Of a stretch of 64,000 nt of DNA, positions 5,041 through 49,819 are shown in pieces. The notes beneath the pieces are model-generated. The model made no database searches. It was not told the DNA's origin and worked only from the letters and a program-made list of their open reading frames with translations. The translations under genes and the position numbers were made by a program. Where the stretch lies: sequence record PV231354.1; one strand, given 5' to 3'. How positions within the stretch are numbered: the first letter of the stretch is position 1; each line of letters opens with the position of its first letter.

Positions 5041-5319
5041 CTAGGATCGCGGCGCTACGTCGTCAACCTCAAGCAGGGCCTTTTGAGCCAGGGCGCGGTT
5101 GTACTCCAGGAGCTTGCGAAGAGCCTTGCGGTCTCCTTCAGCCATGGCGTAGAGCCGCACCACGTCGTCGAAGTCGAACTCGTTGACGAGGTCGCGTAGG
5201 TCCTGGTCCATCCTGTCGATGGTCCGAAACAGGCGCTCGCGGTACTGGCGGCGCTCACGCTGGCGGCGGCGGGCGACGAGGGTGCCGATCCGCTGCCGCA
5301 CGCGACGATGGCGCAGCAT
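5041..5319 (-). CDS. hypothetical protein with Arg-rich N-terminus
   Basis: Coupled to the upstream gene (TGATG); N-terminus RHRRVRQR...RRRQRERRQYRER. Confidence 0.7.
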   Translation of the reverse strand: MLRHRRVRQRIGTLVARRRQRERRQYRERLFRTIDRMDQDLRDLVNEFDFDDVVRLYAMAEGDRKALRKLLEYNRALAQKALLEVDDVAPRS

Positions 5320-5831
5320 CAGAGCGGCTTAGGCGCGTGCCAGTCCTCGCGGTCGTCGGCATAGAGCACCGACGCCAGCGGCCCGGTCCCGATGTCGCAC
5401 TTGGCGGCGATCCCCACCGCCTGGGCGGCCGTGGCGCCCATGTGAAGCGCTCCCAGGGCCGACCACGTACCCGAGCCGAAGGCGTAGAAGGGCGCGCGCA
5501 TCACATAGGCCGGCGCGCCGCTCTCGAACCGCAGGCAGGAGCCATCGGGGAGGATGACGTAACCGTTGGTCTCCTTGTCGGGCTTCTCGGGGCGGCCCAT
5601 GTCGCAGTACGGCCCCTTGCCGCCATCCGCCAGCCACTCATCGAACTTCTCGGACTTGACCCAGTCGAGGAAGATTTGGACGTAGGACGACTCGCCCGCC
5701 GCACCGAAGAGCAGCGTGCCGCCCGGCCCGGTGCGCTTGCCGATCTTGGGAACGTCCCCGCAGGGGGTCCACAGGTCCAGCACCCGCGCATCGGCGGCCA
5801 GGGCGCCGTCTCGATAGACGATACACGTCAT
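5319..5831 (-). CDS. HslV/proteasome-beta-like Ntn hydrolase
   Basis: N-terminal M-T-C-I, ALAADAR, K, LFGAAG, AFGSG, AVGIAAKCDIGT; GGAG RBS. Confidence 0.78.
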   Translation of the reverse strand: MTCIVYRDGALAADARVLDLWTPCGDVPKIGKRTGPGGTLLFGAAGESSYVQIFLDWVKSEKFDEWLADGGKGPYCDMGRPEKPDKETNGYVILPDGSCLRFESGAPAYVMRAPFYAFGSGTWSALGALHMGATAAQAVGIAAKCDIGTGPLASVLYADDREDWHAPKPL

Positions 5832-5862
5832 ACGTCCAAACTCCTACTGATGTCTTCTAGGT

Positions 5863-6552
5863 TTAGCGCGGTGCGCGCGGCAGGCGGGCGGCGGCCGGGT
5901 TCTTCAGCGAGCCGGTGGTCGGCCCGGCTTGGCGAGCGCCGGCCTTGGGGTTGAAGCCCTCGGGCAGGAGCGGCGTGCGGGACTTGCCCGAAGCGGCGGC
6001 GCGCTCCTTGACGAGGTCGTCACCCCCTTCGCTCTGGACCTTGGCGTCGGAGACCAGCTTGTCGCGGCGCTTGGAGGGCGCGACGTTGTTGGACTGGACG
6101 GTGCCGTCCGAGCCGGCCGCGATCTGGCGCGTCGTCAGGTCGACGACCGCGTTGACCAGCGCCGACAGCATCGCCTTTTCGGCGCTGACCGAGGCTGCGG
6201 TCGAGGCGCCCGTGAACCCGGTCTCCTCACCCTTCGCCTTGCCGCTGACGCGCACGGTGATCTGCTTGGTCTTCTTGTTCTTCAGGAAGCCCGAGACCTC
6301 TTCGCGCGTCGAGACGTCGACCCGCGCGCCCGGCGCGATGTGCTCCAGCAGCGCCAGGGCGGCGTGATAGCTGCTGGTGAAATTGAGCGCGCCCTTGTAG
6401 CCGCTCGGGACGGCGATGGTCTTCTCGATCGTTTGATCGATGACCGTCGTGGCCAGATAGGTGGGCTCAGGATCGCGCAGGTAGGTGTCGACCTGCTCCT
6501 TCACGGCCCGCAGGCGGTTGATGTCGATTGAAAGGGCGCGGGTGGCGACCAT
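5863..6552 (-). CDS. hypothetical protein
   Basis: Start moved to MVATRAL (GGAG RBS). Confidence 0.7.
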   Translation of the reverse strand: MVATRALSIDINRLRAVKEQVDTYLRDPEPTYLATTVIDQTIEKTIAVPSGYKGALNFTSSYHAALALLEHIAPGARVDVSTREEVSGFLKNKKTKQITVRVSGKAKGEETGFTGASTAASVSAEKAMLSALVNAVVDLTTRQIAAGSDGTVQSNNVAPSKRRDKLVSDAKVQSEGGDDLVKERAAASGKSRTPLLPEGFNPKAGARQAGPTTGSLKNPAAARLPRAPR

Positions 6553-6562
6553 GGGACTGCTC

Positions 6563-7114
6563 CTATTCCTGTTCATCGATCGCCTGGGCGACCTGGGTGC
6601 TGCTGTAGCGGTAGTTGTTCCAGTGGTCGCTCGTGGCGTAGCGACCCTTGCGCTTGAGGCTGACCTCGACTTCCGGCGAGACCAAGCCCATCTTCTCTCC
6701 GGCCGCGATGAGGTCGAAGAACTTCTGCTGCCAGGGCGGCGGCATCTCCTGGAGGGACATGCGCGGCAGGGTGAACCACGCCATCCGCCCCAGGCCGAAG
6801 AAGCGATCGACCGGTGCGTAGGGCATGGGCATGTCCCCGGCATAATGGACGACCCGCCCGTCGCTCTCCTTGACCGAGTGCGTGTACGCGGCAATCCTGG
6901 CGCGCTCGTAGGCCTCGTCTTCCGCCTGCCGGATAAGCAGGGCGCGGATGTCCTCGGGACAGCCCTGGAAGAACGCCTCATCCTTGGGGGTGAGGCAGTC
7001 GGCCAGGGCCGCCTTGAGCGCGCTGCGCATCTCATCGAGCGCCTGGGCCGCGTCCTCGTCCCGATCGGGATGGAAGTCGTCGGCGATCTCAGCGATGCGG
7101 TCACGCAGGTTCAT
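6563..7114 (-). CDS. hypothetical protein
   Basis: Start moved to MNLRDR, coupled to the upstream stop. Confidence 0.7.
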   Translation of the reverse strand: MNLRDRIAEIADDFHPDRDEDAAQALDEMRSALKAALADCLTPKDEAFFQGCPEDIRALLIRQAEDEAYERARIAAYTHSVKESDGRVVHYAGDMPMPYAPVDRFFGLGRMAWFTLPRMSLQEMPPPWQQKFFDLIAAGEKMGLVSPEVEVSLKRKGRYATSDHWNNYRYSSTQVAQAIDEQE

Positions 7115-7572
7115 TGGCAGACCTTCACGGGGTCGACGGCCGCGACCGGCGACATGTAGGTGTCGGGGTCCCAGGCGCCGGGGACGTTGCCGCCCTCGAT
7201 GTACTGGTAGTCCGGCGACGGCGGCCTCATCGAGCCGCCGTTGCTGGCGACCTTGCCCGGATTGGGATAGGCCGATAGCCACAGGCGCCCGTCGGTGCCG
7301 CGCAGGACAAATTGCCCGCTCTGGCGGCAGACCTTGGCGATCTGCATCCGCCATGCGTAGTTGAGCTTGCGCTTCTTGGCGGCCTCGTCGCGCAGCCACT
7401 GCTCATGGCCCATCCGCGCCCACCGAGCCCTCTTGGCGACGAGGGCCTTGTGCTCGGGCGACCAGCGCAGGTTCTGCTCCTCGTCGAACGACACCGACAC
7501 CGTCACCAGCAAGAGGAGGACCAGGACACCAAGCACCGGGAGCCAGAAGAGCGGATCACGCAGGCGAGACAT
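7111..7572 (-). CDS. Membrane-anchored hypothetical protein
   Basis: N-terminal hydrophobic helix; coupled start/stop. Confidence 0.7.
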   Translation of the reverse strand: MSRLRDPLFWLPVLGVLVLLLLVTVSVSFDEEQNLRWSPEHKALVAKRARWARMGHEQWLRDEAAKKRKLNYAWRMQIAKVCRQSGQFVLRGTDGRLWLSAYPNPGKVASNGGSMRPPSPDYQYIEGGNVPGAWDPDTYMSPVAAVDPVKVCQ

Positions 7573-9029
7573 CAGGCGGGCTCGTCGACGAAGGCGTAGT
7601 CGCCGGTGTCGTAGCCGGCCGCCACGCGCTCGCGGACTTGATCCAGGGTCGTCGGCTCCAGCACCTTGCCGGTGTTGAAGACCTCGTCGAGCAGGTCGTG
7701 CTCAACCACGTCGCCTTCGTGGACCGTGATGGTCTCGAAGCCGCCATGCTCGTTGGTCACGAGCGCCAGCTTGCCCTTCTTGGACACCTTGCCCGGATCG
7801 GTGATCGGGTCCTTGAAGATGTCGACCCACTCGCCGTTGATCTCCTGGGCCGACGACTTCATCGCCCACTTGTTGGTGTCGCGGTCGAGGTCGCCCGTCG
7901 CCAGACCACCGCCGGCCGCCGTCATGATGCTGTCGGGCGCGATGCCCAGGTCCCGGCCCAGGTAGAACGGGTCCATGTGGGTGTGCTCGTTCATGCCGTC
8001 GCCCTGGAGGACCTTGACGTTCATGTTGATGACGTCCAGGCCCTTGCTGTTGCGCTGGGTGCCGAACCCGTCCGCCAGGGTCTTGAGGACCGGCGGGATC
8101 ACCTCGCCCAGGCGCCCGCTGTCGGGGCGGCAGACGATGGTCAGGTTCTTGTTGGCGATCAGGTCCTTGTACTTCACGAGCTTCTTGGCGAACTCGAAGA
8201 TGTTCCAGGTGTCGCCGACCAGCGAGACGATCGAGCCCACCGGCGCGCGCGTCAGGCAGTGCAGGATGTACTCGTCGTCGTTGTCGCGCCCGAACGAGCA
8301 CGAGATCGAGTGCTCGGTGGCCAGCACCGAATAGGCCGACATCTCGCTGAAGTAGTTGATGTTCGCCGCGCGCACGCCGGGCACGTTGTCCGAGCCCTGG
8401 AAGTGGAAGAGGTGAGCGATGCCGGCCAGGACCGAGTGGTCATAGCCCATGGTGCCGCGCGAGGAGAAGTCCAGGAAGGCGAACGGCGACATCGGGGTAT
8501 CGCTGGTCAGTTCCCAGAAAATCTTGATCGACTGGGCGATCTTGTTGACGCGGGCGGCGATCGTCGAGGCCGTCCAGACGTCGCGCAGGATCATGGTCTC
8601 GAAGTACGAGGTCAGCCATGGCAGGCGCGGGTCGAGGTTCTCGACGCTGATCAGCGCGTTCTTGACCGGGATCATCATGCCCTCGGGCACGGCCTTGATC
8701 CGCAGCGGCAGGTAGCCGCCGTATTCGTTCAGGATGATCTCCCAGCCGTCGCGGTTGAACGGCAGGCCGTGGGCCGGCACGAACGCGGCCATCTCTTCGA
8801 TGTCGGCGCGGGTGATCGGCTTGCAGAGCTTCTGGAAGAGCAGGCGCTGGAACGCGGCCAGCATCACCTTGGGGTAACGCCCGCCCCGGCTCTCGATGTA
8901 GCTGTAGACGGTGGTGCAGCCGTCGCGATAGAGCACCCAGTGACCGAGCTTATAGCTGTCGGTGTCGGCGATCAGGTTGTAGGTTTCGACGGGGGCGACC
9001 CCGTCCCAGTTGGCGATGTCGAAGGCCAT
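7572..9029 (-). CDS. nadV: Nicotinamide phosphoribosyltransferase (NAMPT)
   Basis: DTDSYKLGH, DFSSRG, FQGSDN, ATEHS, VGDTWN, RPDSG, QGDG, GGG, KVSKKGK; start moved to MAFDIA. Confidence 0.93.
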   Translation of the reverse strand: MAFDIANWDGVAPVETYNLIADTDSYKLGHWVLYRDGCTTVYSYIESRGGRYPKVMLAAFQRLLFQKLCKPITRADIEEMAAFVPAHGLPFNRDGWEIILNEYGGYLPLRIKAVPEGMMIPVKNALISVENLDPRLPWLTSYFETMILRDVWTASTIAARVNKIAQSIKIFWELTSDTPMSPFAFLDFSSRGTMGYDHSVLAGIAHLFHFQGSDNVPGVRAANINYFSEMSAYSVLATEHSISCSFGRDNDDEYILHCLTRAPVGSIVSLVGDTWNIFEFAKKLVKYKDLIANKNLTIVCRPDSGRLGEVIPPVLKTLADGFGTQRNSKGLDVINMNVKVLQGDGMNEHTHMDPFYLGRDLGIAPDSIMTAAGGGLATGDLDRDTNKWAMKSSAQEINGEWVDIFKDPITDPGKVSKKGKLALVTNEHGGFETITVHEGDVVEHDLLDEVFNTGKVLEPTTLDQVRERVAAGYDTGDYAFVDEPA

Positions 9030-9039
9030 GAGGTCCCCC

Positions 9040-10284
9040 TTAAGCGTTGAGGCTGAGCATGCGGTCCACGATGAAGGCGTGGTCCTCGAAGGTGTTGGAC
9101 GGGTCGATCTCGGAGACCGGGTCCCAGTTCGCCGCCGCCGCGTCGTCGTGACCCTTGACCACCGGCAGGCCCAGGCCCAGCGCCGGCGGCGGGATGACGA
9201 AGTGGAAGGCGTTGGAGATGATGTGGGCGCGCCGCGAGCGGTGCGGGTCATCGAAGAGTTGCGGCTCGCCCACCAGGAAGCGGCGCAGTTCCGCCATCGC
9301 CGCCAGGACGTAAGGCGGCGGGGCCGGCGCGCGCAGCTTCAGCCGCTCGGCCTGCTTGCAGGCGGCGAGCCAGTGGACGAAGCCATACTCGCGCTCCGAG
9401 GGGTGGATGAACAGCGCCGTCTCTTCGATGATCTCGCGCAGGCAGTTGTCCAGCAGGGTGGCGCCGGCGTTGACGAAGCCGCCGGGCAGGGCCTTCATGC
9501 CAAAACCCTCGGCGCCGCCGCGCTCGATCCGCAGGACGTGGCCGGCGCACTCGACCACGCCGTCGACGGCCAGGAACGGACCCGGCCCCCAGCGTTCGCG
9601 GTAGGCGTCCTCGGCCTTCTTCTGGTCGAGCAGGTAGGCATAGACCTTCTTGTCGCGGAAGCGCTCCAGAAAATCGATGGTCGACGGGTAGAGGAGGTCC
9701 GTCCAGGCATAGCCCCGGTCGCTCCAGGAGGTGTCGCGGAAGTTGACCCCGCCGGCGAAATAGGCTTGGCGCAGGGCCGTGGCGTTGACGCCATTGTCCT
9801 CGACGGGGCTGTAGGGCCATTGCGGGAACCACGTCAGGTACTCGCTAGTCGCGTCGCGGACGTTGCCAATCAGGGTGACGCGCGGGCGCAGGACCTTGGT
9901 GGCGTTCTTGACGTGCTGCTGGACCTGGGCGATCCACTCGTTCTTGCCGTAGGGGCCGGTGTCGTTCAGCGCGATCACCTGGGTCTGTTCCAGGCGCTTC
10001 AGGACGTGCCGATCGGCCGCCTCGGGTTCAAGATAGCCCGGCGTGAACTGGCCTTCCAGTTCCTCCAGGGCGAAGTCCTTGATCCCGCCCAGGATCATCT
10101 CCTTGCGCTCCTCGAACGAGAAGGGATTGCGGGTGTCGCGGGCGAGGTTGGCCGAGCCGATGAACCAGAGGACCTTGCGGGCCTTCTTGCGCGCGGCCTG
10201 ATACAGGCGGAAGTGGCCGAGCTTGGTCGGCATTTGCGCCCGCGTGATCAGCACCGCGATGTCGTACTCGAAATCCACCATCAC
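9040..10284 (-). CDS. Bifunctional NMN adenylyltransferase / Nudix hydrolase (NadM-Nudix type)
   Basis: RAQMPTKLGH (HxGH-like), IGSAN, RNPFSFEERKEMI, NATALR; Nudix box LPGGFV...LREIIEET; adjacent to NAMPT. Confidence 0.9.
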   Translation of the reverse strand: MMVDFEYDIAVLITRAQMPTKLGHFRLYQAARKKARKVLWFIGSANLARDTRNPFSFEERKEMILGGIKDFALEELEGQFTPGYLEPEAADRHVLKRLEQTQVIALNDTGPYGKNEWIAQVQQHVKNATKVLRPRVTLIGNVRDATSEYLTWFPQWPYSPVEDNGVNATALRQAYFAGGVNFRDTSWSDRGYAWTDLLYPSTIDFLERFRDKKVYAYLLDQKKAEDAYRERWGPGPFLAVDGVVECAGHVLRIERGGAEGFGMKALPGGFVNAGATLLDNCLREIIEETALFIHPSEREYGFVHWLAACKQAERLKLRAPAPPPYVLAAMAELRRFLVGEPQLFDDPHRSRRAHIISNAFHFVIPPPALGLGLPVVKGHDDAAAANWDPVSEIDPSNTFEDHAFIVDRMLSLNA

Positions 10285-10706
10285 CTCCTAAAGGCCGGGC
10301 GGATGCGCCGGGCCGGCTTGTTCTCGGTCAATTCCCGCCCGCTGAAGGACGGGAAGGAAAGCTCGCTGATGCCGTTCTGCCGTATGGCGAACTGGCGCTT
10401 CTTGGTGTCGATCCCGTCCAGGTGCGTGCTGCGCCGCCGCTCGATCAGTTCGAGGTCGACGACGTCGCCAAACACCTTGCCGTGGAAAATCTGCCGCCGC
10501 GCCCAGGTGATGGCCGATCCCAGGTGCTCGAACGCCCTGGTCTTCTCGGCCTCCTGGAGGCTGGCGCCGTCGTGGAAGGACGGGTCCACCCACGACAGCT
10601 TGATTTCCCGCGCCGGGAGCGTCTTCACCAGGACGTTGATGGCCTCGTGCCCGTAGCGCTGGGCGAAGTCGCCCACGTCGTAGCTTTCGATGTCCAGCAC
10701 CATCAT
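10281..10706 (-). CDS. hypothetical protein
   Basis: Start moved to MMVLDIES because the track start overlaps the -10 element. Confidence 0.65.
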   Translation of the reverse strand: MMVLDIESYDVGDFAQRYGHEAINVLVKTLPAREIKLSWVDPSFHDGASLQEAEKTRAFEHLGSAITWARRQIFHGKVFGDVVDLELIERRRSTHLDGIDTKKRQFAIRQNGISELSFPSFSGRELTENKPARRIRPAFRR

Positions 10707-10732
10707 GGTGATCGGCTTGGTCGTTAGGGACG

Positions 10733-10762
10733 ACACTATCGATTTCCCTCCGGCTTTGTCAA
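10733..10762 (-). promoter_or_regulatory. sigma70-type promoter
   Basis: TTGACA-N18-TAGTGT. Confidence 0.5.
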
Positions 10763-10766
10763 CGCT

Positions 10767-11243
10767 TTAACGCAGGAGCTTCAGCGACGAGGGGGCGTGG
10801 TATTTGAACGCCGCCTCGGTGATCGGCCCGATCCCCACGAAGGTCACGGTCGGCTTCTCGAAGACGGTGCGCCCGGCGTCGACGACCAGGGTCGCGCCGG
10901 CATACTCCCGGAAGCGCTCGTAGAGGGCTTCCAGTTCTTCGTTGGTGCCGGTGTGGAGCGCGATCTTCGCCGCCGACTGCGAGTAGCGGTACTGGCGCGC
11001 GGTCTTGGGGAAGCGCTCCATGGCGTCCCACCACGCATGCAGGTAGGCGTGGCCAGCCTGGGCGGAGAGCTTGCCGATGTTGAGGGACTTGTCCTCGGGC
11101 TTGCGGCTGCGCTTGGCCACGGTCATCGCGTCGAGCGCTTCCTGGCTGACGATGGCGTAGAGGCGCAGTTCAGCCTTGGACTTGCCGGCGAAGCACGCCA
11201 TCACGAGGTCCCAGGCGTGCAACCAGCTTTCGAAGAATTTCAT
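10767..11243 (-). CDS. pth2: Peptidyl-tRNA hydrolase, Pth2 family
   Basis: GKLSAQAGHA, KIAL, VVDAGRT, TFVGIGP. Confidence 0.88.
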   Translation of the reverse strand: MKFFESWLHAWDLVMACFAGKSKAELRLYAIVSQEALDAMTVAKRSRKPEDKSLNIGKLSAQAGHAYLHAWWDAMERFPKTARQYRYSQSAAKIALHTGTNEELEALYERFREYAGATLVVDAGRTVFEKPTVTFVGIGPITEAAFKYHAPSSLKLLR

Positions 11244-11683
11244 GCCCGCAAGGCCCTTTCGTAGTGGTCCTCCAGCGCGATGGCCGCGTCGAAGGCGATG
11301 TCGATGAGGTCCTCGTTGATGATGACCTCGCAGGATCGGTGGAGGCTGATCAACGCCAGGGGCTCGTAGGCCTTGTTGAGCGTCGACAGCGTCTTGATGT
11401 TCAGGGCCAGTCGATCGAGCAGCTTGACGCCGTAGACCTCAGGTCCGAACGGGTGCTTCTGCGCGTAGAGCCGCTTCTTGACCTTCGGAAAGGTCTCCCA
11501 GTCCTTGACGTGCAGGTCGGACATCAGGTCGGCGGTCTGCTCGATCAGGGTCACATAGCGCATCAGCTTGCGGAGCCGGACCTGGATGTCGTCGGACTTG
11601 GCCGTCGGCGGAGGATCGCGACAATCCTCCGCCTCATGGGCCGCCAGCATCCGCGCTCGAAAGAGGACGTCGGCGATCGGCAC
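11240..11683 (-). CDS. hypothetical protein
   Basis: Coupled ORF in operon. Confidence 0.65.
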   Translation of the reverse strand: MPIADVLFRARMLAAHEAEDCRDPPPTAKSDDIQVRLRKLMRYVTLIEQTADLMSDLHVKDWETFPKVKKRLYAQKHPFGPEVYGVKLLDRLALNIKTLSTLNKAYEPLALISLHRSCEVIINEDLIDIAFDAAIALEDHYERALRA

Positions 11684-11686
11684 CGA

Positions 11687-12124
11687 TTAGGCCTCGGGCG
11701 TCGGGGCTTCGGCTTCCGGCTCGGCGGCGGCGGTGGTCTTGGCCTTGCCTTTGCTGCCCGACGACGGCGAGGCCTGCGCTTCGTCAGCCGCCGGCGCGGC
11801 GGCCGGGGTCTCGACCAGAACCGGCTCGGCGTCGGCCGGCACGTCGACCGCAGCGTAGTCGGCCTCGAACGCGGCCGGCTTCAGGATCAGCAGTTCGTAG
11901 TCGTCGCCGCGCGGGATGCGCACGATGAAGTCGTCCTGGGTCGCCGAGGCGATCTGGCCGTTGATCGGGACCAGCAGCTTGCCGACGGCATCCTTGCCGA
12001 CAGCCATGGTGCCCATGGCGGTGTAGGCGGTGTGCTGCGTCAGCCACTCGGGCAGGTCTTCCAGGCGCTGGAAGGTGTATTGGACCGCATCCACGGTCAC
12101 GGGCAGACGAGTGTACTTGCTCAA
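11687..12124 (-). CDS. Conserved-type phage hypothetical protein
   Basis: KYTRLPVTVDAVQY N-terminus, Ala/Pro/Glu-rich tail; AGGAG RBS. Confidence 0.75.
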   Translation of the reverse strand: MSKYTRLPVTVDAVQYTFQRLEDLPEWLTQHTAYTAMGTMAVGKDAVGKLLVPINGQIASATQDDFIVRIPRGDDYELLILKPAAFEADYAAVDVPADAEPVLVETPAAAPAADEAQASPSSGSKGKAKTTAAAEPEAEAPTPEA

Positions 12125-12133
12125 GGATAGCTC

Positions 12134-12718
12134 CTACTGGGGCTGGGCCGGCGCCGGGATGGCGAAGGCAAGGGAGTCTTCGACCAGGGCCAAGAGGTCG
12201 GTGACCAGCTTGGGATTGAGGTCGTCTTGGGTCAGGGCGGCGGCGACGGCGTTGATCCGCGACCACGTGAAGTCCTCGGTCAGGCCGAGATTGTGGAGGC
12301 GCAGCAGGGTCTCGCCGTGGATCGCCACGACGCCGGAAAGCTCGCGCAGGGTGCGCAGGGTCAGAGGCCGCTCGGAGAGCATCTTGATCGCGCTGCCCGA
12401 GGGCGCCAGGAGCAGGCGCATCCAGTCGCCGGCGGGATCGTCGGCCCGGCGCAGGTCCGGATGGTCCAGGGTCGCGCCCCAGATCACCGCGTGGGCTTTC
12501 GCTGCCAGCGACTGGCGGCGCTTGGCGATGGCCTCGGCTTCCTTGGCTTCGCGCTGGGCCGCCAGGAAGGTGGCGATGATCACCGAGGGGAAGATCGCCA
12601 CCAGGAAGAAGGCGAGGCGGTCGGTCCAGACCGCGTGCGGCGTGACCACGTTCATGCCCGTGCCGATCAGCACCGTCGGGTAGATCAGCCCGCCGTGGCG
12701 GTGGATGAAGCGGATCAT
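12134..12718 (-). CDS. Membrane protein, hypothetical
   Basis: Two N-terminal hydrophobic segments; first gene after a promoter. Confidence 0.75.
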   Translation of the reverse strand: MIRFIHRHGGLIYPTVLIGTGMNVVTPHAVWTDRLAFFLVAIFPSVIIATFLAAQREAKEAEAIAKRRQSLAAKAHAVIWGATLDHPDLRRADDPAGDWMRLLLAPSGSAIKMLSERPLTLRTLRELSGVVAIHGETLLRLHNLGLTEDFTWSRINAVAAALTQDDLNPKLVTDLLALVEDSLAFAIPAPAQPQ

Positions 12719-12734
12719 GAAAAGGGCCTCCGGC

Positions 12735-12793
12735 GTTGTCGTCGAAGGCCCTTCTAGCGAGTCGGTGTCAGGCTGTCAACACTTGTCAGCCAG
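12735..12793 (-). promoter_or_regulatory. Early promoter with upstream element and leader
   Basis: CTGGC-N6-GTG-TTGACA-N17-TAGAAG then CGACGACAAC and GGAGG. Confidence 0.85.
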
Positions 12794-13394
12794 CGTCTTC
12801 CACCAGCCGCGCGATCCGCTCGAAGCCCAGTTCCAGGCGGCCCCAGAAGGCACCGGGCACGTGCGGCTTGACGACCTCGGTGAAGCGGGCGCGCTCCTTC
12901 AGGTACATCTTGGCCATGCCCAGATGCGGTGCGTTCGTCGCCGGGTCCTTGATCGAGGCCTCGACGTTGGCGATCCGATCGGCCAGCTTCAGGATGCAGG
13001 CCTCGGGGTGCTCGCCCAGCTTGCGGTAGATGTCCTCGTTGCGGGCCTTGCGGTTGGGGCCGATGCCCGACACCGCCCAGACCAGCGCCGCGACGCGCTC
13101 GCCGAACTTGTCCTCAACCATCTGCCGGCGGGCCTCGGGCGTCATGTCGAGGTGGGTGTCCTCGATCACGTCGTGCAGTTTGGCCGCCGCCGTCCAGGTG
13201 AAGCCCGCATAGCCGTAGTCGTCCAGGATGCGCTCGACCTTCTGGAGGTGGTAGAGGTAGGGCTGGCCGGCGTACTGCTGCTCGCCGTGCGCGGCGATGG
13301 CGAACTTCGTCGGGTCCTCCTGCTGGTAGGTGCCGGGGGCGTCCTCCATCAGGCTGGCCAGTTGATCGGGATCGGACAGGGGCGTGTCGGTCAT
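12786..13394 (-). CDS. RelA/SpoT-type HD hydrolase (small alarmone hydrolase-like)
   Basis: AHGEQQYAGQPYLYHL, AKLHDVIEDT, FGERVAALV, KLADRIAN. Confidence 0.85.
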   Translation of the reverse strand: MTDTPLSDPDQLASLMEDAPGTYQQEDPTKFAIAAHGEQQYAGQPYLYHLQKVERILDDYGYAGFTWTAAAKLHDVIEDTHLDMTPEARRQMVEDKFGERVAALVWAVSGIGPNRKARNEDIYRKLGEHPEACILKLADRIANVEASIKDPATNAPHLGMAKMYLKERARFTEVVKPHVPGAFWGRLELGFERIARLVEDAG

Positions 13395-13798
13395 GACGTT
13401 TTCTCGGGGATCAGGGTGAAGACCTCCACCCCCTCGTCGATGCGCATGTGGTGCGTCGGCGGGTGGGCGGGGTTGTAGCGGATGTAGCCGGCGAGGCCGC
13501 CGTCGATCATCGCGCCGCCGCGCTCCTGGTAGTCGTGGCGGAAGCGCGAGACCAGGAACGAGCCGTCGGCGAGCTTGATGGCCGAGAACACCGCCTCGCG
13601 GATCGAGGCCGCCGAGGTGATGTAGATGCCGTCCTTGAGCGGGTGGATGAAGAGGCCAAAGTAGTTGTCGTGGCCCTGCGAGCGATCCGGCGTCTCGGTG
13701 TAGAAGACGTAGAACGGCCCCTCCCGGTCCGGGAGGTCGTAGTAGCCCACGTACTTGGCGTTGTAGTGCTCTTCGGCGGCTTTGACGTTGATGCCCAT
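13391..13798 (-). CDS. hypothetical protein
   Basis: Coupled ORF. Confidence 0.7.
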   Translation of the reverse strand: MGINVKAAEEHYNAKYVGYYDLPDREGPFYVFYTETPDRSQGHDNYFGLFIHPLKDGIYITSAASIREAVFSAIKLADGSFLVSRFRHDYQERGGAMIDGGLAGYIRYNPAHPPTHHMRIDEGVEVFTLIPEKTS

Positions 13799-14298
13799 CA
13801 GGCGACCCTCAGAAATTCACCCCAGGCTGGGGCGGCGTATTTCAGGTAGGCCTCGTGCGCGGCCTCCGGCGTAGTATAGCGCCCCAGGAAGCGATAGACA
13901 CCATGAATGGTGATCTGGGCCTGGAACGGCTTGCTCTTGCACCGGCACTTGGTCACGCCCTTGGGCAGGGCGCCGATCGGGCGGCGGTTGACGAGGTTCT
14001 GAGACCGAGTCGCCTTCCGGAGGTTCTTGATCCGGTTGTTGCGGCGGTTGCAGTCCTCGTGGTCGACGTCATGGTCGGGGACGACCCCGTGGTGGAGCGC
14101 CCAGGCCAGCTTGTGGGCGGCGATCTGGATGCGGCGGCCCTCGAAAGGAACCTTGATCACCCGGTAGCCGTCCTGGTTGACCGTGCCCAGGCGCTTGCGG
14201 GTCTTGGAGCCCCGCAGGTAGATGGCGCCAGACGAAGCCTCGTAGCGGTAGCGCGCCTTGAGGTACTCGACCGGGATGACGTACTCTGCCCCCGACAT
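13798..14298 (-). CDS. HNH homing endonuclease with AP2-like domain
   Basis: AHKLAW, VDHEDCNRRNNRIKNLR; C-terminal KGV...FQAQI...LGRY...AHEAY. Confidence 0.88.
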   Translation of the reverse strand: MSGAEYVIPVEYLKARYRYEASSGAIYLRGSKTRKRLGTVNQDGYRVIKVPFEGRRIQIAAHKLAWALHHGVVPDHDVDHEDCNRRNNRIKNLRKATRSQNLVNRRPIGALPKGVTKCRCKSKPFQAQITIHGVYRFLGRYTTPEAAHEAYLKYAAPAWGEFLRVA

Positions 14299-14302
14299 GG
14301 GA

Positions 14303-14542
14303 TCAATCCTTCTTAGCGTGCCGCTTGAAGAGGAGATAGAAGAGGTAGGCGACCAGCACGCCGAGCCAGCAGAACCACAGGATCACCGCCTGCCCCAGGG
14401 TCATAAAGAAGAACCCGATCTTCCAGTCGTCGTTGAAACGGTTCTCCCGGTTCTCCCAGACCTTGGGGTAGTCGATGGCGTAGCGGTAGCCGATCCGGGC
14501 CAGCGCGATCAGGCCGCCCAGGATGAAATAGATGTCCTGCAT
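14303..14542 (-). CDS. Small membrane protein
   Basis: Two hydrophobic segments. Confidence 0.7.
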   Translation of the reverse strand: MQDIYFILGGLIALARIGYRYAIDYPKVWENRENRFNDDWKIGFFFMTLGQAVILWFCWLGVLVAYLFYLLFKRHAKKD

Positions 14543-14549
14543 GGCGGAC

Positions 14550-14825
14550 TTACTTCGTGGAGGCGTTGTCGACGGCGTCGACGGCCTTCTCCGCCAGGGC
14601 GCCCAGCTTCTTGCGGACGAAGAAGAACACGCCGGCCCAGAAGCCCAGGAACAGCGCCAGCGGCCAGATCAGGCCGATGATGATCCCGGCGATGCCGAAG
14701 AAGAAGCAGTAGACGCCGATGCCTTCGTAGTTGGTGATCCCCAGCTTGCGGAACACCGCCGGGAAGACGGTCGCGGCGGCGGCCCAGACGCCGGCGCAGA
14801 TGAAGAGCGCGGTGAGGAAATACAT
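14550..14825 (-). CDS. Small membrane protein
   Basis: Hydrophobic, coupled ORF. Confidence 0.7.
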   Translation of the reverse strand: MYFLTALFICAGVWAAAATVFPAVFRKLGITNYEGIGVYCFFFGIAGIIIGLIWPLALFLGFWAGVFFFVRKKLGALAEKAVDAVDNASTK

Positions 14826-15127
14826 CAGGTCGGTTCCTTTTCGAGCCCGTGGTCGGGGTCGTACTTGACGAGGATGCCGTCTTCGTTCCGGTGCTCCATC
14901 AGAGGCAGGCCGGAGACGAACTGCGGCACGAAGAGGTCGCGGCGCGGCTGCTGGAGCCAGATGAGGCCGGTCTCGGCCACCTGCGCGCGCTCGGCCGGCG
15001 AAAGCTCCCAGCAGGAGATCACGCCCTCAGGGCCGGTGTAGGTGTGCAGCGGGATGACCGAGTCCTCGTTGCCCGGCGCCGGGTTCCAGACCTTGTTGGA
15101 GCCGGCGAAGTTACGCGGCGTGGCCAT
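14825..15127 (-). CDS. Phage hypothetical protein
   Basis: ISCWELSPAERAQV motif; coupled ORF. Confidence 0.7.
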   Translation of the reverse strand: MATPRNFAGSNKVWNPAPGNEDSVIPLHTYTGPEGVISCWELSPAERAQVAETGLIWLQQPRRDLFVPQFVSGLPLMEHRNEDGILVKYDPDHGLEKEPT

Positions 15128-15359
15128 GCTTGGACCCCTTGTTGACGAAGAACCAGATCGCCAGCGCGATCAGGAAGCCGGGTACGGCCAGAGGCCATGC
15201 GAAGGTGACGCCCAGGAAGACGAAGACGCCCAGGAAGACCGCACCGACCGCGTCGGAGAGCTTGAGCACCCCGTCCTTGGTCTCGTGCTTGATCGCCCAG
15301 AAGAGCGCGCCCAGGCCGGCGATCACGCCGACGATGAGAGAGAAGAGGATGTACTTCAA
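15111..15359 (-). CDS. Small membrane protein
   Basis: Hydrophobic, coupled ORF. Confidence 0.7.
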   Translation of the reverse strand: MKYILFSLIVGVIAGLGALFWAIKHETKDGVLKLSDAVGAVFLGVFVFLGVTFAWPLAVPGFLIALAIWFFVNKGSKHGHAA

Positions 15360-15739
15360 AGCAAGCCCGCCGCCTGCTTGGCGGCCTCCTTGGCGCGGAC
15401 CTTGTCATGCGACAGGCTCTTCACGCGGTTGATCTCGTCGGCCTCGCAGCCGTCGGCGCTGATGCCGAGGTTCTCGCAGAGGGTGTAGAGCGACAGGAGC
15501 AACCCGCCGACCTCCTCCTTGACCTCGCCGACCGGACGCCCGTAGGTCCAGTGGGCCTGCCGGATCACGTCCTCCAAGGTCAGGCCCTGGGTCTGGACGA
15601 GTTCCATGCACTCCTCCAGCGTCCGGAAGGCCTGGATGCGGCGGTTGAAGACGCGGCCCGTCAGGACCTCCTCAACCCACTTCCAGCACCATGTCTGGCG
15701 CTTGGCCCGGTGCTCGTGGCAGGCGTCCACCTCGGTCAC
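15356..15739 (-). CDS. MazG-like nucleotide pyrophosphohydrolase
   Basis: RTLEECMELVQ...VKEEVGGLLLSL acidic helical pattern; GTG start overlaps the upstream TGA. Confidence 0.6.
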   Translation of the reverse strand: MTEVDACHEHRAKRQTWCWKWVEEVLTGRVFNRRIQAFRTLEECMELVQTQGLTLEDVIRQAHWTYGRPVGEVKEEVGGLLLSLYTLCENLGISADGCEADEINRVKSLSHDKVRAKEAAKQAAGLL

Positions 15740-15885
15740 GACTTGGTCCACTTGAACAGGCTCCAGAACGATTGGCGGGTATCGCGTGACCAGCGCCAGG
15801 GGCGGATCACCAGGATCGAGGCGATGACGGCGACGATCGCGTAGATCGTCGCCGCCCGCCCCAGGACGTCCAGGAAGGCCGTCAC
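15736..15885 (-). CDS. 49-aa membrane peptide (not in ORF track)
   Basis: MTAFLDVLGRAATIYAIVAVIASILVIRPWRW...; fills the gap between rtcB and the MazG-like gene. Confidence 0.6.
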   Translation of the reverse strand: MTAFLDVLGRAATIYAIVAVIASILVIRPWRWSRDTRQSFWSLFKWTKS

Positions 15886-15888
15886 CGA

Positions 15889-17121
15889 CTAGCCCTTCAC
15901 GCAGAGGACTTGCTTCAGGGTGTGGACGATGTCCACGAGGTCCTTCTGCGCCTCCATGACCGCGTCGATGTCCTTGTAGGCCATCGGGATTTCGTCGATC
16001 ACGCCGATGTCCTTGCGGCACTCGACGCCTTCGGTCGCCTTGATCTGGTCTTCCAGCGTGAAGGCGGCCTTGGCGGCGGTGCGCGACATGGTCCGCCCCG
16101 CGCCGTGCGAGCACGAGCAGAACGAGTCGGCGTTGCCCTTGCCGCGCACGATGTAGGACTTGGCCCCCATCGAGCCGGGGATGATGCCAAACTGGTCCTT
16201 CTGAGCCGACACCGCGCCCTTGCGGGTCACGAAGACCCACTCGTCGAAGTGGAACTCCTTCTGGACATAGTTGTGGTGGCAGTTCACCGCTTCCTTGTCC
16301 GTCTTGAAGGGCGGCAGGCCCGAGGCGCGCATGGCGTCCAGGACCCGGATCATCATCATCTCGCGGTTGATCCGCGCGAAGTCCTGACCCCAGGCGACGG
16401 CTTCCACGTAGTCGTAGAATTCCGGCTCGCCTTCCGACAGCCACGCGAGGTCCTTGTCGAGCGGCTTCTGGCCGTCCCGACGCAGCATCATCTCCTTGGC
16501 CTTCTCGATGAAGATACGGCCGATGGTGTTGCCGACGCCGCGCGAGCCCGAGTGGAGCATCACCCAGACGCGCTGGTCCTCGTCGAGGCAGACCTCGATG
16601 AAGTGGTTGCCGCCGCCCAGCGTGCCCAGTTGGACGACGCTGTTGGCGTTCTTGAGGGTCTTGTACTTGTCGCAGAGCTTCTCGAACCGGGCTTCCAGGC
16701 CCGAGTCGACCCACTTGCGCATGATCGAGTTCGGGATGCCGCTACGCCCGTTCCAGCCGCCCGACGGACCCGGCCCGCCGTGCGGGACGGCGTGCTCGAT
16801 CAGCGAGCGCAGCTTGGCGAGGCTGTCGGGCAGGTCCGAGGCCTTCAGCGAGGTACGCACGGCCATCATGCCGCAGCCGATGTCCACGCCCACGGCCGCC
16901 GGGATGATGGCGCCCTTGGTCGGGATCACCGATCCCACGGTCGAGCCGATGCCCATGTGGACGTCCGGCATCAGGGCCACGTGCGAGTGGATGAACGGCA
17001 GGGCGGCGAGGTTGTGCGCCTGCACCTGGGCGGGCTGCTCGAAGGTCACACCCCGGACCCAGGCCTTGATCACCCCGCCGTTCCAGCCGGTGATCTCTTC
17101 GTATTGGGTCTCGGCGGTCAT
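15889..17121 (-). CDS. rtcB: RNA-splicing/repair ligase RtcB
   Basis: LMPDVH, VGVDIGCG, GTLGGGNHFIE, HSGSRG, CHHNY, RKGA, PGSMG, SHGAGR, DEIPMAYKDI. Confidence 0.96.
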   Translation of the reverse strand: MTAETQYEEITGWNGGVIKAWVRGVTFEQPAQVQAHNLAALPFIHSHVALMPDVHMGIGSTVGSVIPTKGAIIPAAVGVDIGCGMMAVRTSLKASDLPDSLAKLRSLIEHAVPHGGPGPSGGWNGRSGIPNSIMRKWVDSGLEARFEKLCDKYKTLKNANSVVQLGTLGGGNHFIEVCLDEDQRVWVMLHSGSRGVGNTIGRIFIEKAKEMMLRRDGQKPLDKDLAWLSEGEPEFYDYVEAVAWGQDFARINREMMMIRVLDAMRASGLPPFKTDKEAVNCHHNYVQKEFHFDEWVFVTRKGAVSAQKDQFGIIPGSMGAKSYIVRGKGNADSFCSCSHGAGRTMSRTAAKAAFTLEDQIKATEGVECRKDIGVIDEIPMAYKDIDAVMEAQKDLVDIVHTLKQVLCVKG

Positions 17122-17136
17122 GTGCTCCTCGCTGCC

Positions 17137-24633: not shown

Positions 24634-24691
24634 GTTGTCGTCGAGGGGCTTATAGGCGGAGGTCAGCGACCTGTCAACACTCTCACGCCAA
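24634..24691 (-). promoter_or_regulatory. Early promoter with upstream element and leader
   Basis: TTGGC-N6-GTG-TTGACA-N17-TATAAG, CGACGACAAC. Confidence 0.85.
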
Positions 24692-34837: not shown

Positions 34838-34896
34838 GTTGTCGTCGACGCTCCCTATAGACCCGGCCTGTCAGCCTGTCAACACTCGACAGCCAA
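34838..34896 (-). promoter_or_regulatory. Early promoter with upstream element and leader
   Basis: TTGGC-N6-GTG-TTGACA-N17-TATAGG, CGACGACAAC. Confidence 0.85.
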
Positions 34897-44632: not shown

Positions 44633-44682
44633 GAGTGTTGACAGTCTCGCCGCGCCCGGCTACAAGCCTCCTCGACGACAAC
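44624..44682 (+). promoter_or_regulatory. Early promoter with upstream element and leader
   Basis: TTGGC-N6-GTG-TTGACA-N17-TACAAG, CGACGACAAC. Confidence 0.85.
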
Positions 44683-47713: not shown

Positions 47714-47783
47714 TTGGCGTTAGAGTGTTGACAGTCATTGGGGCCTCCTCTATATCCACCCTCGACGACAACGAGGAGGCCCC
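47714..47783 (+). promoter_or_regulatory. Early promoter with upstream element, leader and 11-bp inverted repeat
   Basis: TTGGC-N6-GTG-TTGACA-N17-TATATC; GGGGCCTCCTC...GAGGAGGCCCC. Confidence 0.87.
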
Positions 47784-47784
47784 G

Positions 47785-49533
47785 ATGACGACCGAGACCA
47801 TGACCCTGAGCTTCCGTATCGAAGGCGCCGCCCTGGTGGAGCGCGCCCGCGACCGGGTCATCGAAGGCGCCTGGGAGCATGGCCTGCGCATCCTCGTCGA
47901 GGGTCTGCACGGCATGACCTACGAGATCGCCATCGACATCCTGATGGGCAAGTACACCCTGGGCGGCTGGTCCTCGGACCCCGAGGGCGTCTACCTCACC
48001 GAGCAAGACCCCGAGGACGAGACCTTCAAGCGCTACAAGGAGACGTTCGACTTCCAGTTCGCCGGCGTCTTCAAGGACGAGACGGGCCGCATCATGCGCC
48101 CCTACGCCATCGTCGACAGCTACGGCAAGAAGGACTTCGACTCCAAGTACCGCTACGACCACGCCCGCGCGCGCGGCTCGGACGAGTTCCTGTCGCGCCC
48201 GGTGCGCTACCACGACATCCTGGGCAAGGACCCGATCGACTGGGCCTATCGCGCCCTGCATTACGCCAACCTGCCGCAGCAAGACATCGTCAAGCGGGTC
48301 AAGAACCCCGGCGAATACCACGGCACGATCCAGGAGATGGCCGCGCTATTCGAGGTCATCCACGACTACCCCAAGCTCCTGCTGCCCTACGTCACCAACA
48401 GCGCCCAGGAGGCCGTCGACAAAGCGGTCGCCTCCGGCCGCCGGATGGAGAAGCGCGGCTATGTCCACGAGTACGGCCCCAATGATCCGTTCGCTGAGTT
48501 CCACGCCGTGACGACCACGGCGATCGACAACTTGCCGCCCCAGTGGGTGATCGAGAACCAAGCCTATGAGCCCCCGGCGCCGGTCAAGGCCCTGGAGGAC
48601 TTCAAGCAGGGCGTCGCGAGCGCCCCTGATGAGGTCTCGGCGATGAACCGGATGATCGTCAAGGAGGTCAACGCCGGCACGAGCATGTCGACCGCCATCG
48701 CCCTGGCCCGCGCCAAGATGGCGCTGATGGGTGGCATGGCCGAGGACCCTGAAGAGCGCATGTCGGCGATTAACGCCCACTTGGCGGCGGAGGCCGAGCG
48801 CGCCGAAGGCAAGTCCAACGAGACCTACCGCAAGGCGATCCAGGAGCAGGCCGCCGGCGACTACTTCGATCTCGTGTACACGGGTAAGGGTGGCGAGGAG
48901 GTGACCCTGAAGGTCCCGACCGCGCCGTTCGAGAAGTGGTGCCTGTGGCGCACCGCCGGCGCTCACCTCGCCAAGCCGTGGAAGCGCGTCACCTATTCGG
49001 GTCTGAAGTGCTTCGGCGACGACCCCTATCACACCGACTGGGTCATCGGCGCGGGCCTGGAGCCCGAGGATTGGCCGACCCGCAGCGACGACCCGCTGCA
49101 CAAGGCCGCCTGGGACAAGCGCTTCGAGGTCGCCCAGAGCAAGATGGGCGGCAATCTGGTGGTCCTGCTGGGCACGGGCTTCGTGACCGGCAAGATCAAG
49201 CACCTCAAGCCGGGCGAGACCCTGGAGCGGGGGCAGATCGGCGTGATCCGCAACGCTGGCCCCGACTACGTCCAGGCCGCCGTCAGCGCGATCGACAACA
49301 ACGCCGCCCTGATCACCGAGAACGGCGGCAACGTCGCCCACCTCGTCACCGAGTTCCGGGACAAGCCGCTGCGTCTGGTGCGCATCGCCGACGCCCGCAA
49401 GATTTTCAAGGACGGCATGGAGGTCGACCTCGACCTGGATAAGGCATGGCGCCGTATCTACGAAGGCTCGCGCGGTCCCGCGCCGGGTGACCTCTACCTG
49501 CCGCCGGAATGGGAGATTCAAGATGACGCATGA
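47785..49533 (+). CDS. Large protein with C-terminal PEP-utiliser phospho-His swivel domain
   Basis: ALITENGGNVAHLVTEFRD...ARKIFKDGMEVDLD; start moved to MTTETM. Confidence 0.72.
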   Translation: MTTETMTLSFRIEGAALVERARDRVIEGAWEHGLRILVEGLHGMTYEIAIDILMGKYTLGGWSSDPEGVYLTEQDPEDETFKRYKETFDFQFAGVFKDETGRIMRPYAIVDSYGKKDFDSKYRYDHARARGSDEFLSRPVRYHDILGKDPIDWAYRALHYANLPQQDIVKRVKNPGEYHGTIQEMAALFEVIHDYPKLLLPYVTNSAQEAVDKAVASGRRMEKRGYVHEYGPNDPFAEFHAVTTTAIDNLPPQWVIENQAYEPPAPVKALEDFKQGVASAPDEVSAMNRMIVKEVNAGTSMSTAIALARAKMALMGGMAEDPEERMSAINAHLAAEAERAEGKSNETYRKAIQEQAAGDYFDLVYTGKGGEEVTLKVPTAPFEKWCLWRTAGAHLAKPWKRVTYSGLKCFGDDPYHTDWVIGAGLEPEDWPTRSDDPLHKAAWDKRFEVAQSKMGGNLVVLLGTGFVTGKIKHLKPGETLERGQIGVIRNAGPDYVQAAVSAIDNNAALITENGGNVAHLVTEFRDKPLRLVRIADARKIFKDGMEVDLDLDKAWRRIYEGSRGPAPGDLYLPPEWEIQDDA

Positions 49534-49819
49534 ACTGATTATGGTCCAGGTGGGTGGGCAAGCCCATTCGCACTTCTCGATCGAGACGCGCGAGGCCGAG
49601 GTGCCGGGCGGAAAGCTCTACATCACCACGGCGCATGCCGGCGAGAACTGCGAGGCCATATCGGTCGCCCAGACCTTCGTGCCGACGCCGCCGCCGTCTA
49701 AGGTCGTGACCATCCCCGACGAGGTGCTGCGCGACCTGATGAGCCGCAAGGACGTCGCCAGCGGGCGCTCGCTGCTCAAGAAGTGGCTGTTCGCCCACGG
49801 CCTGGAGCTTGAGGCCTGA
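49523..49819 (+). CDS. hypothetical protein
   Basis: Start MTHELI. Confidence 0.65.
   Translation: MTHELIMVQVGGQAHSHFSIETREAEVPGGKLYITTAHAGENCEAISVAQTFVPTPPPSKVVTIPDEVLRDLMSRKDVASGRSLLKKWLFAHGLELEA

Follow-up and report, generated by a model that had tools for sequence, protein, structure and literature searches.

A possible self-contained phosphotransferase among large phages and megaplasmids: the orphan swivel-domain protein of a phiCbK-like Caulobacter phage

The gene at positions 47,785 to 49,533 of the analysed stretch of DNA (64,000 nucleotides of sequence record PV231354.1, hereafter the window) encodes a 582-residue protein that ends in a phospho-histidine swivel domain, and thereby raises the question of where the phosphate for such a domain would come from and to what it would be passed. 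To our knowledge, every characterised swivel-domain enzyme receives its phosphate from an ATP-grasp domain or from a barrel that binds phosphoenolpyruvate (PEP), and neither can be recognised here. The reading favoured in this study, to which a probability of about 0.4 is given, is that the protein is a self-contained phosphotransferase of new architecture, in which His519 would shuttle phosphate between two new sites. Judged by its identity to phages of the RBC63, CcrRogue and phiCbK type, the window is a section of a ~223-kb phiCbK-like siphophage (Poindextervirus): identity is 100% with Caulobacter phages RBC63, RBC8, RBC11 and BL64, 98% with CcrRogue, whose orthologue of the swivel gene (gp242) is annotated 'hypothetical protein', and about 79% with phiCbK, Karma, Magneto and Swift. 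The reading frame has 582 codons, from an ATG at 47785, with the Shine-Dalgarno sequence GAGGAGG lying 5 nt upstream, to a stop codon ending at 49533, and the same start codon was chosen in annotated relatives. The PHROG family phrog_11532, of unknown function, covers the full protein (E = 0, 1041 bits, aa 2-580 against profile positions 1-586).

The nature of the C-terminal domain is decided by the relatives of the protein, since the single sequence stays below threshold. A Pfam scan of the full-length protein gave zero matches; its last 130 residues reach E 0.03 and 14.3 bits against PF00391, under the 23.1-bit cut-off, and phmmer returned only the C-terminal domain of the pyruvate kinase from Geobacillus (E 0.3). 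Many homologues exceed the PF00391 threshold, with 36-47 bits. A profile built from 20 family sequences matched the swivel domain of rifampin phosphotransferase (RPH) with E 4.6e-8, and one built from 148 sequences matched PEP synthase (8a8e, E 1.8e-13), pyruvate kinase (2e28, E 2.6e-12) and RPH (E 6.9e-12). Alignment by hhalign with E. coli PpsA (97% probability, E 8.6e-11) placed His519 opposite the catalytic His421, structure matching found the swivel beta-barrel fold, and among structures the domain is matched best by RPH-type proteins, which also account for several of its NCBIfam matches. The residues around His519, TENGGNVAH, conform to the swivel-domain motif T/SxxGGxxxH (PMC12167813). 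The C-terminal region is a mobile swivel domain of the PF00391/IPR008279 type, which confirms the original prediction, made from the sequence of the window, of a mobile His domain with its histidine retained. Of the kinships proposed at that time, the one with PEP synthase holds, while that with Enzyme I of the phosphotransferase system (PTS) is marginal (hhalign with E. coli Enzyme I, 18%, E 1.4e-3).

Conservation was counted in 162 representatives, mostly 25-40% identical to the window protein. His519 is kept in 158 of the 159 relatives that reach this position, and the two glycines of the motif in 159 and 155 relatives. The preceding residue is alanine (in 133 of the 162) rather than the regulatory Thr/Ser found there in PEP synthase, PPDK and Enzyme I. 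Because the histidine is near-invariant among relatives of such low identity, its conservation argues for chemistry rather than scaffolding.

No comparable likeness was found for residues 1-456. They have no family match in Pfam, NCBIfam or PADLOC, the NCBIfam matches being confined to the swivel region, and no sequence match in the PDB even with the deep 148-sequence profile; the hhalign alignments with PpsA and with E. coli Enzyme I do not extend beyond the swivel domain. By Pfam, both PPDK_N (PF01326) and the PEP-utilizers_C TIM barrel (PF02896) are absent from the window protein, and the HPr-binding helical subdomain and the EIC domain gave no match. Foldseek and VIA-align, run with the whole AlphaFold2 (AF2) model, which is of medium confidence, detected no ATP-grasp and no known fold for residues 1-456. 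The substrate domain of RPH had no structural match, and the substrate-binding domain of HpeH, like the RIF-binding domain of RPH, had neither a sequence match nor a fold match in this medium-confidence model, whose subdomains were not searched separately. The earlier statement that the protein has no recognisable ATP-grasp or PEP-binding domain is thus borne out by Pfam, hhalign and Foldseek alike.

Two near-invariant polar clusters occur in this part of the protein. One consists of R22, D117, R156 and Y160; the other consists of K408, D412, H416 and D418, which are kept in 159, 161, 161 and 162 of the 162 sequences, respectively, and belongs to a signature K-x3-DDPYHTDW in aa 345-456, where P378, P381, F382, W385 and W399 are also near-invariant. 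In the AF2 models the confidence score pLDDT (predicted local distance difference test) is mostly 80-90 over aa 1-230, apart from a low-confidence stretch at about aa 120-150, falls below 50 in much of aa 231-344 and rises to 80-95 over aa 345-456. Distant relatives align only from about aa 325-350 onwards. The limits of these regions are given in Table 1.

The extent of the family was determined with a profile of the N-terminal part only, searched against 1.84 billion cluster representatives at the 50% identity level. The family comprises about 1,300 representatives: 1,326 proteins pass E <= 0.001, and 524 pass E <= 1e-30. The best 150 of the ~1,300 are 349-631 aa long, match the whole N-terminal profile and all contain the swivel domain as well; to judge from these best 150 and their full cover of the profile, the N-terminal module always travels with the swivel domain in this architecture. 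Homologues found by tblastn and word search include proteins of Brevundimonas phage Bajun, Caulobacter phage Seuss, several Vibrio phages and metagenomic contigs. The carriers are viral contigs of 80 kb to 578 kb, among them uncultured jumbo phages, a prophage-like region, and two megaplasmids, one of 801 kb from Variovorax and one of 910 kb from Pseudomonas. The megaplasmid copies, in plasmid 2 of Variovorax sp. SRS16 (locus L032, 3792-5339) and in a plasmid of Pseudomonas sp. FeN3W (locus L033, 3813-5291), are surrounded by phage-like genes for RNA ligase, RNase H, EF-Tu and aminoacyl-tRNA hydrolase. A gene for a small outer-membrane beta-barrel lies one or two genes downstream of the family member in Variovorax and in a 545-kb contig (L003). 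When 185,579 species genomes were scanned with one peptide pattern, a single copy was confirmed, in Thalassospira, the pattern being so stringent that this says little on absence elsewhere. In this copy (Thalassospira xianhensis, locus L022, 4347-6669) the middle and swivel parts are in a 373-aa open reading frame (ORF) that is overlapped upstream by a 431-aa ORF in another frame, and the gene may be frameshifted or split.

All-against-all comparison of the flanking ORFs of 18 loci from 14 lineages revealed no neighbour shared between lineages, and only antisense shadow ORFs clustered. By its genomic context, the family is a single gene without a conserved partner, and it would be accessory to the large phages and megaplasmids that carry it. 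Its members appear in databases as 'PEP-utilising enzyme mobile domain-containing protein' (UniRef) or, in the case of two Vibrio phage genes, as 'PEP-utilizing enzyme'; the window protein had no match in the PADLOC library of defence systems, and a literature search turned up no paper dealing with the family or with swivel-domain proteins of phages. What is new here is the limits of the family, the candidate active-site residues, the conserved N-terminal module, which has no known fold, and the lack of a classical donor domain in the carrier genomes.

The last point was addressed in the carrier genomes because some dikinases are two-component enzymes: in HpeHI, CreHI and phenylphosphate synthase PpsAB the ATP-grasp subunit is separate from the subunit bearing the substrate part and the swivel domain (PMC12167813). 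The search covered the genomes of five carrier phages, of which four are 97% complete or more, and 14 control genomes including Caulobacter vibrioides. PPDK_N and PEP-utilizers_C were absent from all five carriers; the same families were recovered in 13 or 14 of the 14 controls, and the C. vibrioides genome has proteins of both. The family member is the only swivel-domain protein of each carrier phage, an additional match in one of them (G004) being negligible (E 0.16, over 14 profile positions). The general idea of the original prediction, a phage phospho-His carrier or a new phosphotransferase, is therefore supported, as the swivel domain and its histidine are conserved and no classical donor is found in the protein or in the five carrier genomes.

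The preference for a self-contained phosphotransferase rests on the invariance of the histidine and of the two polar clusters, on a two-part architecture that stays constant and on the missing partner gene. In such an enzyme the swivel domain would carry phosphate on His519 and swing between two sites formed by residues 1-456, being loaded from a donor, ATP or PEP, at the first and discharging at the second to an acceptor that might be a small molecule, a nucleotide or a macromolecule of the host. It would work in the manner of RPH or of the HpeH-type dikinases, but unrelated domains would stand in for their ATP-grasp and substrate domains, and it would be expressed from its own host-type promoter. 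A precedent is HpeH, which consists of a substrate domain and a swivel domain only and catalyses phosphotransfer alone (PMC12167813). The swivel fold, the conserved histidine, the polar clusters, the single-gene distribution and the absence of classical donor domains are observed, whereas autophosphorylation, the part played by each site and the identity of donor and acceptor are our inference. The further proposal that residues 1-456 are a new phosphoryl-donor and acceptor module replacing both the ATP-grasp and the substrate domain, and that the enzyme phosphorylates a host or defence molecule during infection, is offered tentatively. Several points weigh against a self-contained enzyme. In residues 1-456 neither a fold nor a motif for the binding of nucleotides or PEP could be recognised, and the AF2 models are of medium confidence only (pLDDT 73, predicted template modelling score 0.42-0.48), so that a diverged known fold may have escaped, the ordered subdomains not having been searched one by one. 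In the Atlas, the orthologue from CcrSwift gave a weak, unconfirmed lead to Rph_4th (0.90), a score within the range of chance matches.

The strongest of the alternatives, though an unlikely one, is that the protein depends on the host and corresponds to the H-type half in a dikinase of two components, its His519 being loaded in trans by the ATP-grasp or PEP-binding domain of host PpsA or PPDK, or by Enzyme I or EI-Ntr, so that the host's phosphoryl flux from PEP or ATP would be diverted to a target of the phage's choosing or simply drained; this would cover the earlier PTS interpretation. The missing donor domain in the protein and in the five carriers would be explained, two-component dikinases provide the precedent, the PPDK_N and PEP-utilizers_C proteins of Caulobacter could serve as the loading enzymes, and the swivel domain is nearest to the PEP synthase type. 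However, the tethered swivel domains of the host enzymes would out-compete one acting in trans, the very different hosts across the family would require a conserved docking surface, and the likeness to the swivel domain of Enzyme I is only marginal. The two conserved polar clusters also exceed the needs of an acceptor site alone.

The same clusters bear on a second alternative, a non-catalytic mimic, in which the swivel domain would be a decoy blocking host PpsA, PPDK or Enzyme I, or else a regulatory phospho-sensing module, as in the pyruvate kinase of Geobacillus and Bacillus, that controls an unrelated N-terminal activity. This appears improbable, as a conserved N-terminal part of 340 residues with invariant K/D/H/D and R/D/R/Y looks enzymatic, and a near-absolute GG...H at 25% identity goes beyond the usual need of a binding mimic. 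Least probable of all is a diverged dikinase of the RPH/PigC/YvkC type acting on a small molecule, for example an antibiotic-like anti-phage compound, its ATP-grasp and substrate domains having drifted past detection: the domain order (catalytic part, then C-terminal swivel), the RPH-type swivel matches and two Rph_4th clusters from the Atlas feature search (0.89-0.90, unconfirmed) agree with it, but the RPH type needs about 750 residues ahead of the swivel domain where about 340 conserved residues are present, Foldseek and VIA-align found no ATP-grasp, the alignment with PpsA covers the swivel domain alone and the Atlas scores fall in the range of chance matches.

The more specific part of the original prediction, an action on the PTS-Ntr phosphorelay and through it on SpoT, is not supported. 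The control of SpoT by PTS-Ntr in Caulobacter is established (PMC4848567), but nothing found here ties the swivel gene to it: the swivel domain belongs with those of PEP synthase and RPH, the HPr-binding and EIC domains are lacking, and the role is not Caulobacter-specific, because family members occur widely in phages of Vibrio and Brevundimonas, in uncultured jumbo phages and in megaplasmids of Variovorax and Pseudomonas, and the phages have unrelated hosts. Nor does the gene appear to complement an alarmone hydrolase of the same window, as had been suggested; the protein in question, an HD 'metal-dependent phosphohydrolase', is encoded on the minus strand about 34 kb away, in another transcription block. 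The earlier interpretation as a whole is partly supported.

Table 1. Coordinates, in the window, of the swivel gene, the parts of its protein and the adjacent elements
Feature	Position	Strand	Basis
Coding sequence, 582 aa, orphan swivel-domain protein (PHROG 11532; CcrRogue gp242 orthologue)	47785..49533	+	ORF, homology
N-terminal alpha/beta region, aa 1-230, conserved family-wide; near-invariant R22, G55, P106, D117, R156, Y160, P196	47785..48474	+	alignments, AF2
Linker/helical region, aa 231-344, variable, low-confidence, lengthened in the phiCbK group	48475..48816	+	pLDDT, gappy alignments
Middle region, aa 345-456, with the swivel domain the most conserved part of the family	48817..49152	+	alignments, pLDDT
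Signature KCFGDDPYHTD (K408, D412, D413, H416, D418), candidate metal/phosphate site	49006..49038	+	conservation; putative function
Phospho-histidine swivel domain, PF00391-type, aa 457-560	49153..49464	+	profile and structure matches
His519 codon, predicted phospho-acceptor, inside TENGGNVAH (49315-49341)	49339..49341	+	T/SxxGGxxxH motif, alignment
Promoter-like element TTGACA-N17-TATATC (class TTGACAG-N16-CTAYA)	47728..47756	+	sequence read
TTGACAG-N16-CTAYA copies	24651-24677, 34856-34882, 44638-44664, 47728-47754	-, -, +, +	pattern count
16-bp GC-rich inverted repeat, core arms GGGGCCTCCTC (47740-47750) and GAGGAGGCCCC (47773-47783)	47735..47788	+	RNA fold
98-aa gene (PHROG 12291, unknown), overlapping the end of the swivel coding sequence by 11 nt	49523..49819	+	

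Upstream of the swivel gene lies a promoter-like element (Table 1), in which TTGACA (47728-47733) is separated by a 17-nt spacer from TATATC (47751-47756). It was not called by a generic scan for E. coli-type promoters, and its -10 region fits the Caulobacter housekeeping type, CTANAWC. The pattern TTGACAG-N16-CTAYA, to which it belongs, has four copies in the window where 0.01 would be expected by chance, and the copy at the swivel gene is kept in CcrRogue, Karma and CcrBL10. These elements are probably host sigma-70-type phage promoters that head gene blocks on both strands. The element is overlapped by an inverted repeat (RNA fold -31.3 kcal/mol, z -6.4), one arm of which lies over the promoter spacer and the other over the start codon together with its Shine-Dalgarno sequence. 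In Karma both arms are changed, with pairing apparently kept in an alignment judged by eye. Because a transcript from this promoter would lack the 5' arm, a hairpin would block translation in read-through RNA only; the repeat may be either an operator or a device that occludes the Shine-Dalgarno sequence in read-through transcripts. A search of sequencing runs for RNA evidence yielded small portions of the window in wastewater metagenomes only. The 98-aa gene that follows is probably co-translated with the swivel gene, given the overlap of the two reading frames, and it adjoins family members inside the phiCbK group only.

Elsewhere in the window, a block on the minus strand (5062-17125) encodes, according to the annotation of RBC63, an HslV-like peptidase, nicotinamide phosphoribosyltransferase (NAMPT), a cytidylyltransferase that is possibly like nicotinamide mononucleotide adenylyltransferase, peptidyl-tRNA hydrolase, the HD metal-dependent phosphohydrolase mentioned above (12790-13398) and an RtcB-type tRNA ligase. 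It looks like a kit for NAD salvage and translation repair, unlinked to the swivel gene. A link between the family and NAD salvage was considered and rejected, since NAMPT occurs only in the three jumbo genomes and the carriers of 85 kb and 80 kb lack it.

Because neither an ATP-grasp domain nor a PEP barrel is present in the protein or in the examined carrier genomes, the family would have either a new donor chemistry or fold, or a way of parasitising host enzymes, and both outcomes would be novel for phage biology and for the enzyme superfamily. The question is tractable at the bench, as the protein looks soluble and is encoded by a single gene in the well-studied Caulobacter/phiCbK system and in cultured Vibrio phages, and the N-terminal region is a clear candidate for a Pfam entry.

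Comparison with the known systems places the window protein apart from each of them. Relative to RPH (PDB 5hv1/5fbs), it is about 300 residues shorter, has no ATP-grasp and no recognisable RIF-binding domain, and its N-terminal part shows no detectable homology; a search with NF041857 gave no loci suited to a comparison with RPH. With Enzyme I and EI-Ntr it shares the marginal affinity of the swivel domain only, without the HPr-binding helical subdomain or the EIC domain. The pyruvate kinases of Geobacillus and Staphylococcus (2e28, 3t05) have an extra C-terminal PEP-utiliser domain, but the remainder of the window protein is not a pyruvate kinase. PEP synthase and PPDK have the swivel domain closest by sequence; in the window protein, PPDK_N and the PEP-utilizers_C barrel are lacking and alanine replaces the Thr/Ser of the TSH motif. 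With HpeHI, CreHI and PpsAB the partner differs, as no I-type ATP-grasp gene adjoins the swivel gene or occurs in the five carrier genomes, but in its own chain the protein looks like their H-type subunit, with a putative substrate part ahead of a T/SxxGGxxxH swivel domain and with no ATP-grasp. If residues 1-456 are indeed a new donor and acceptor module, as tentatively proposed above, the family would join PEP synthase/PPDK, Enzyme I and the RPH-type dikinases as the fourth class, by architecture, of phospho-His swivel enzymes, and one that has spread through large phages and megaplasmids.
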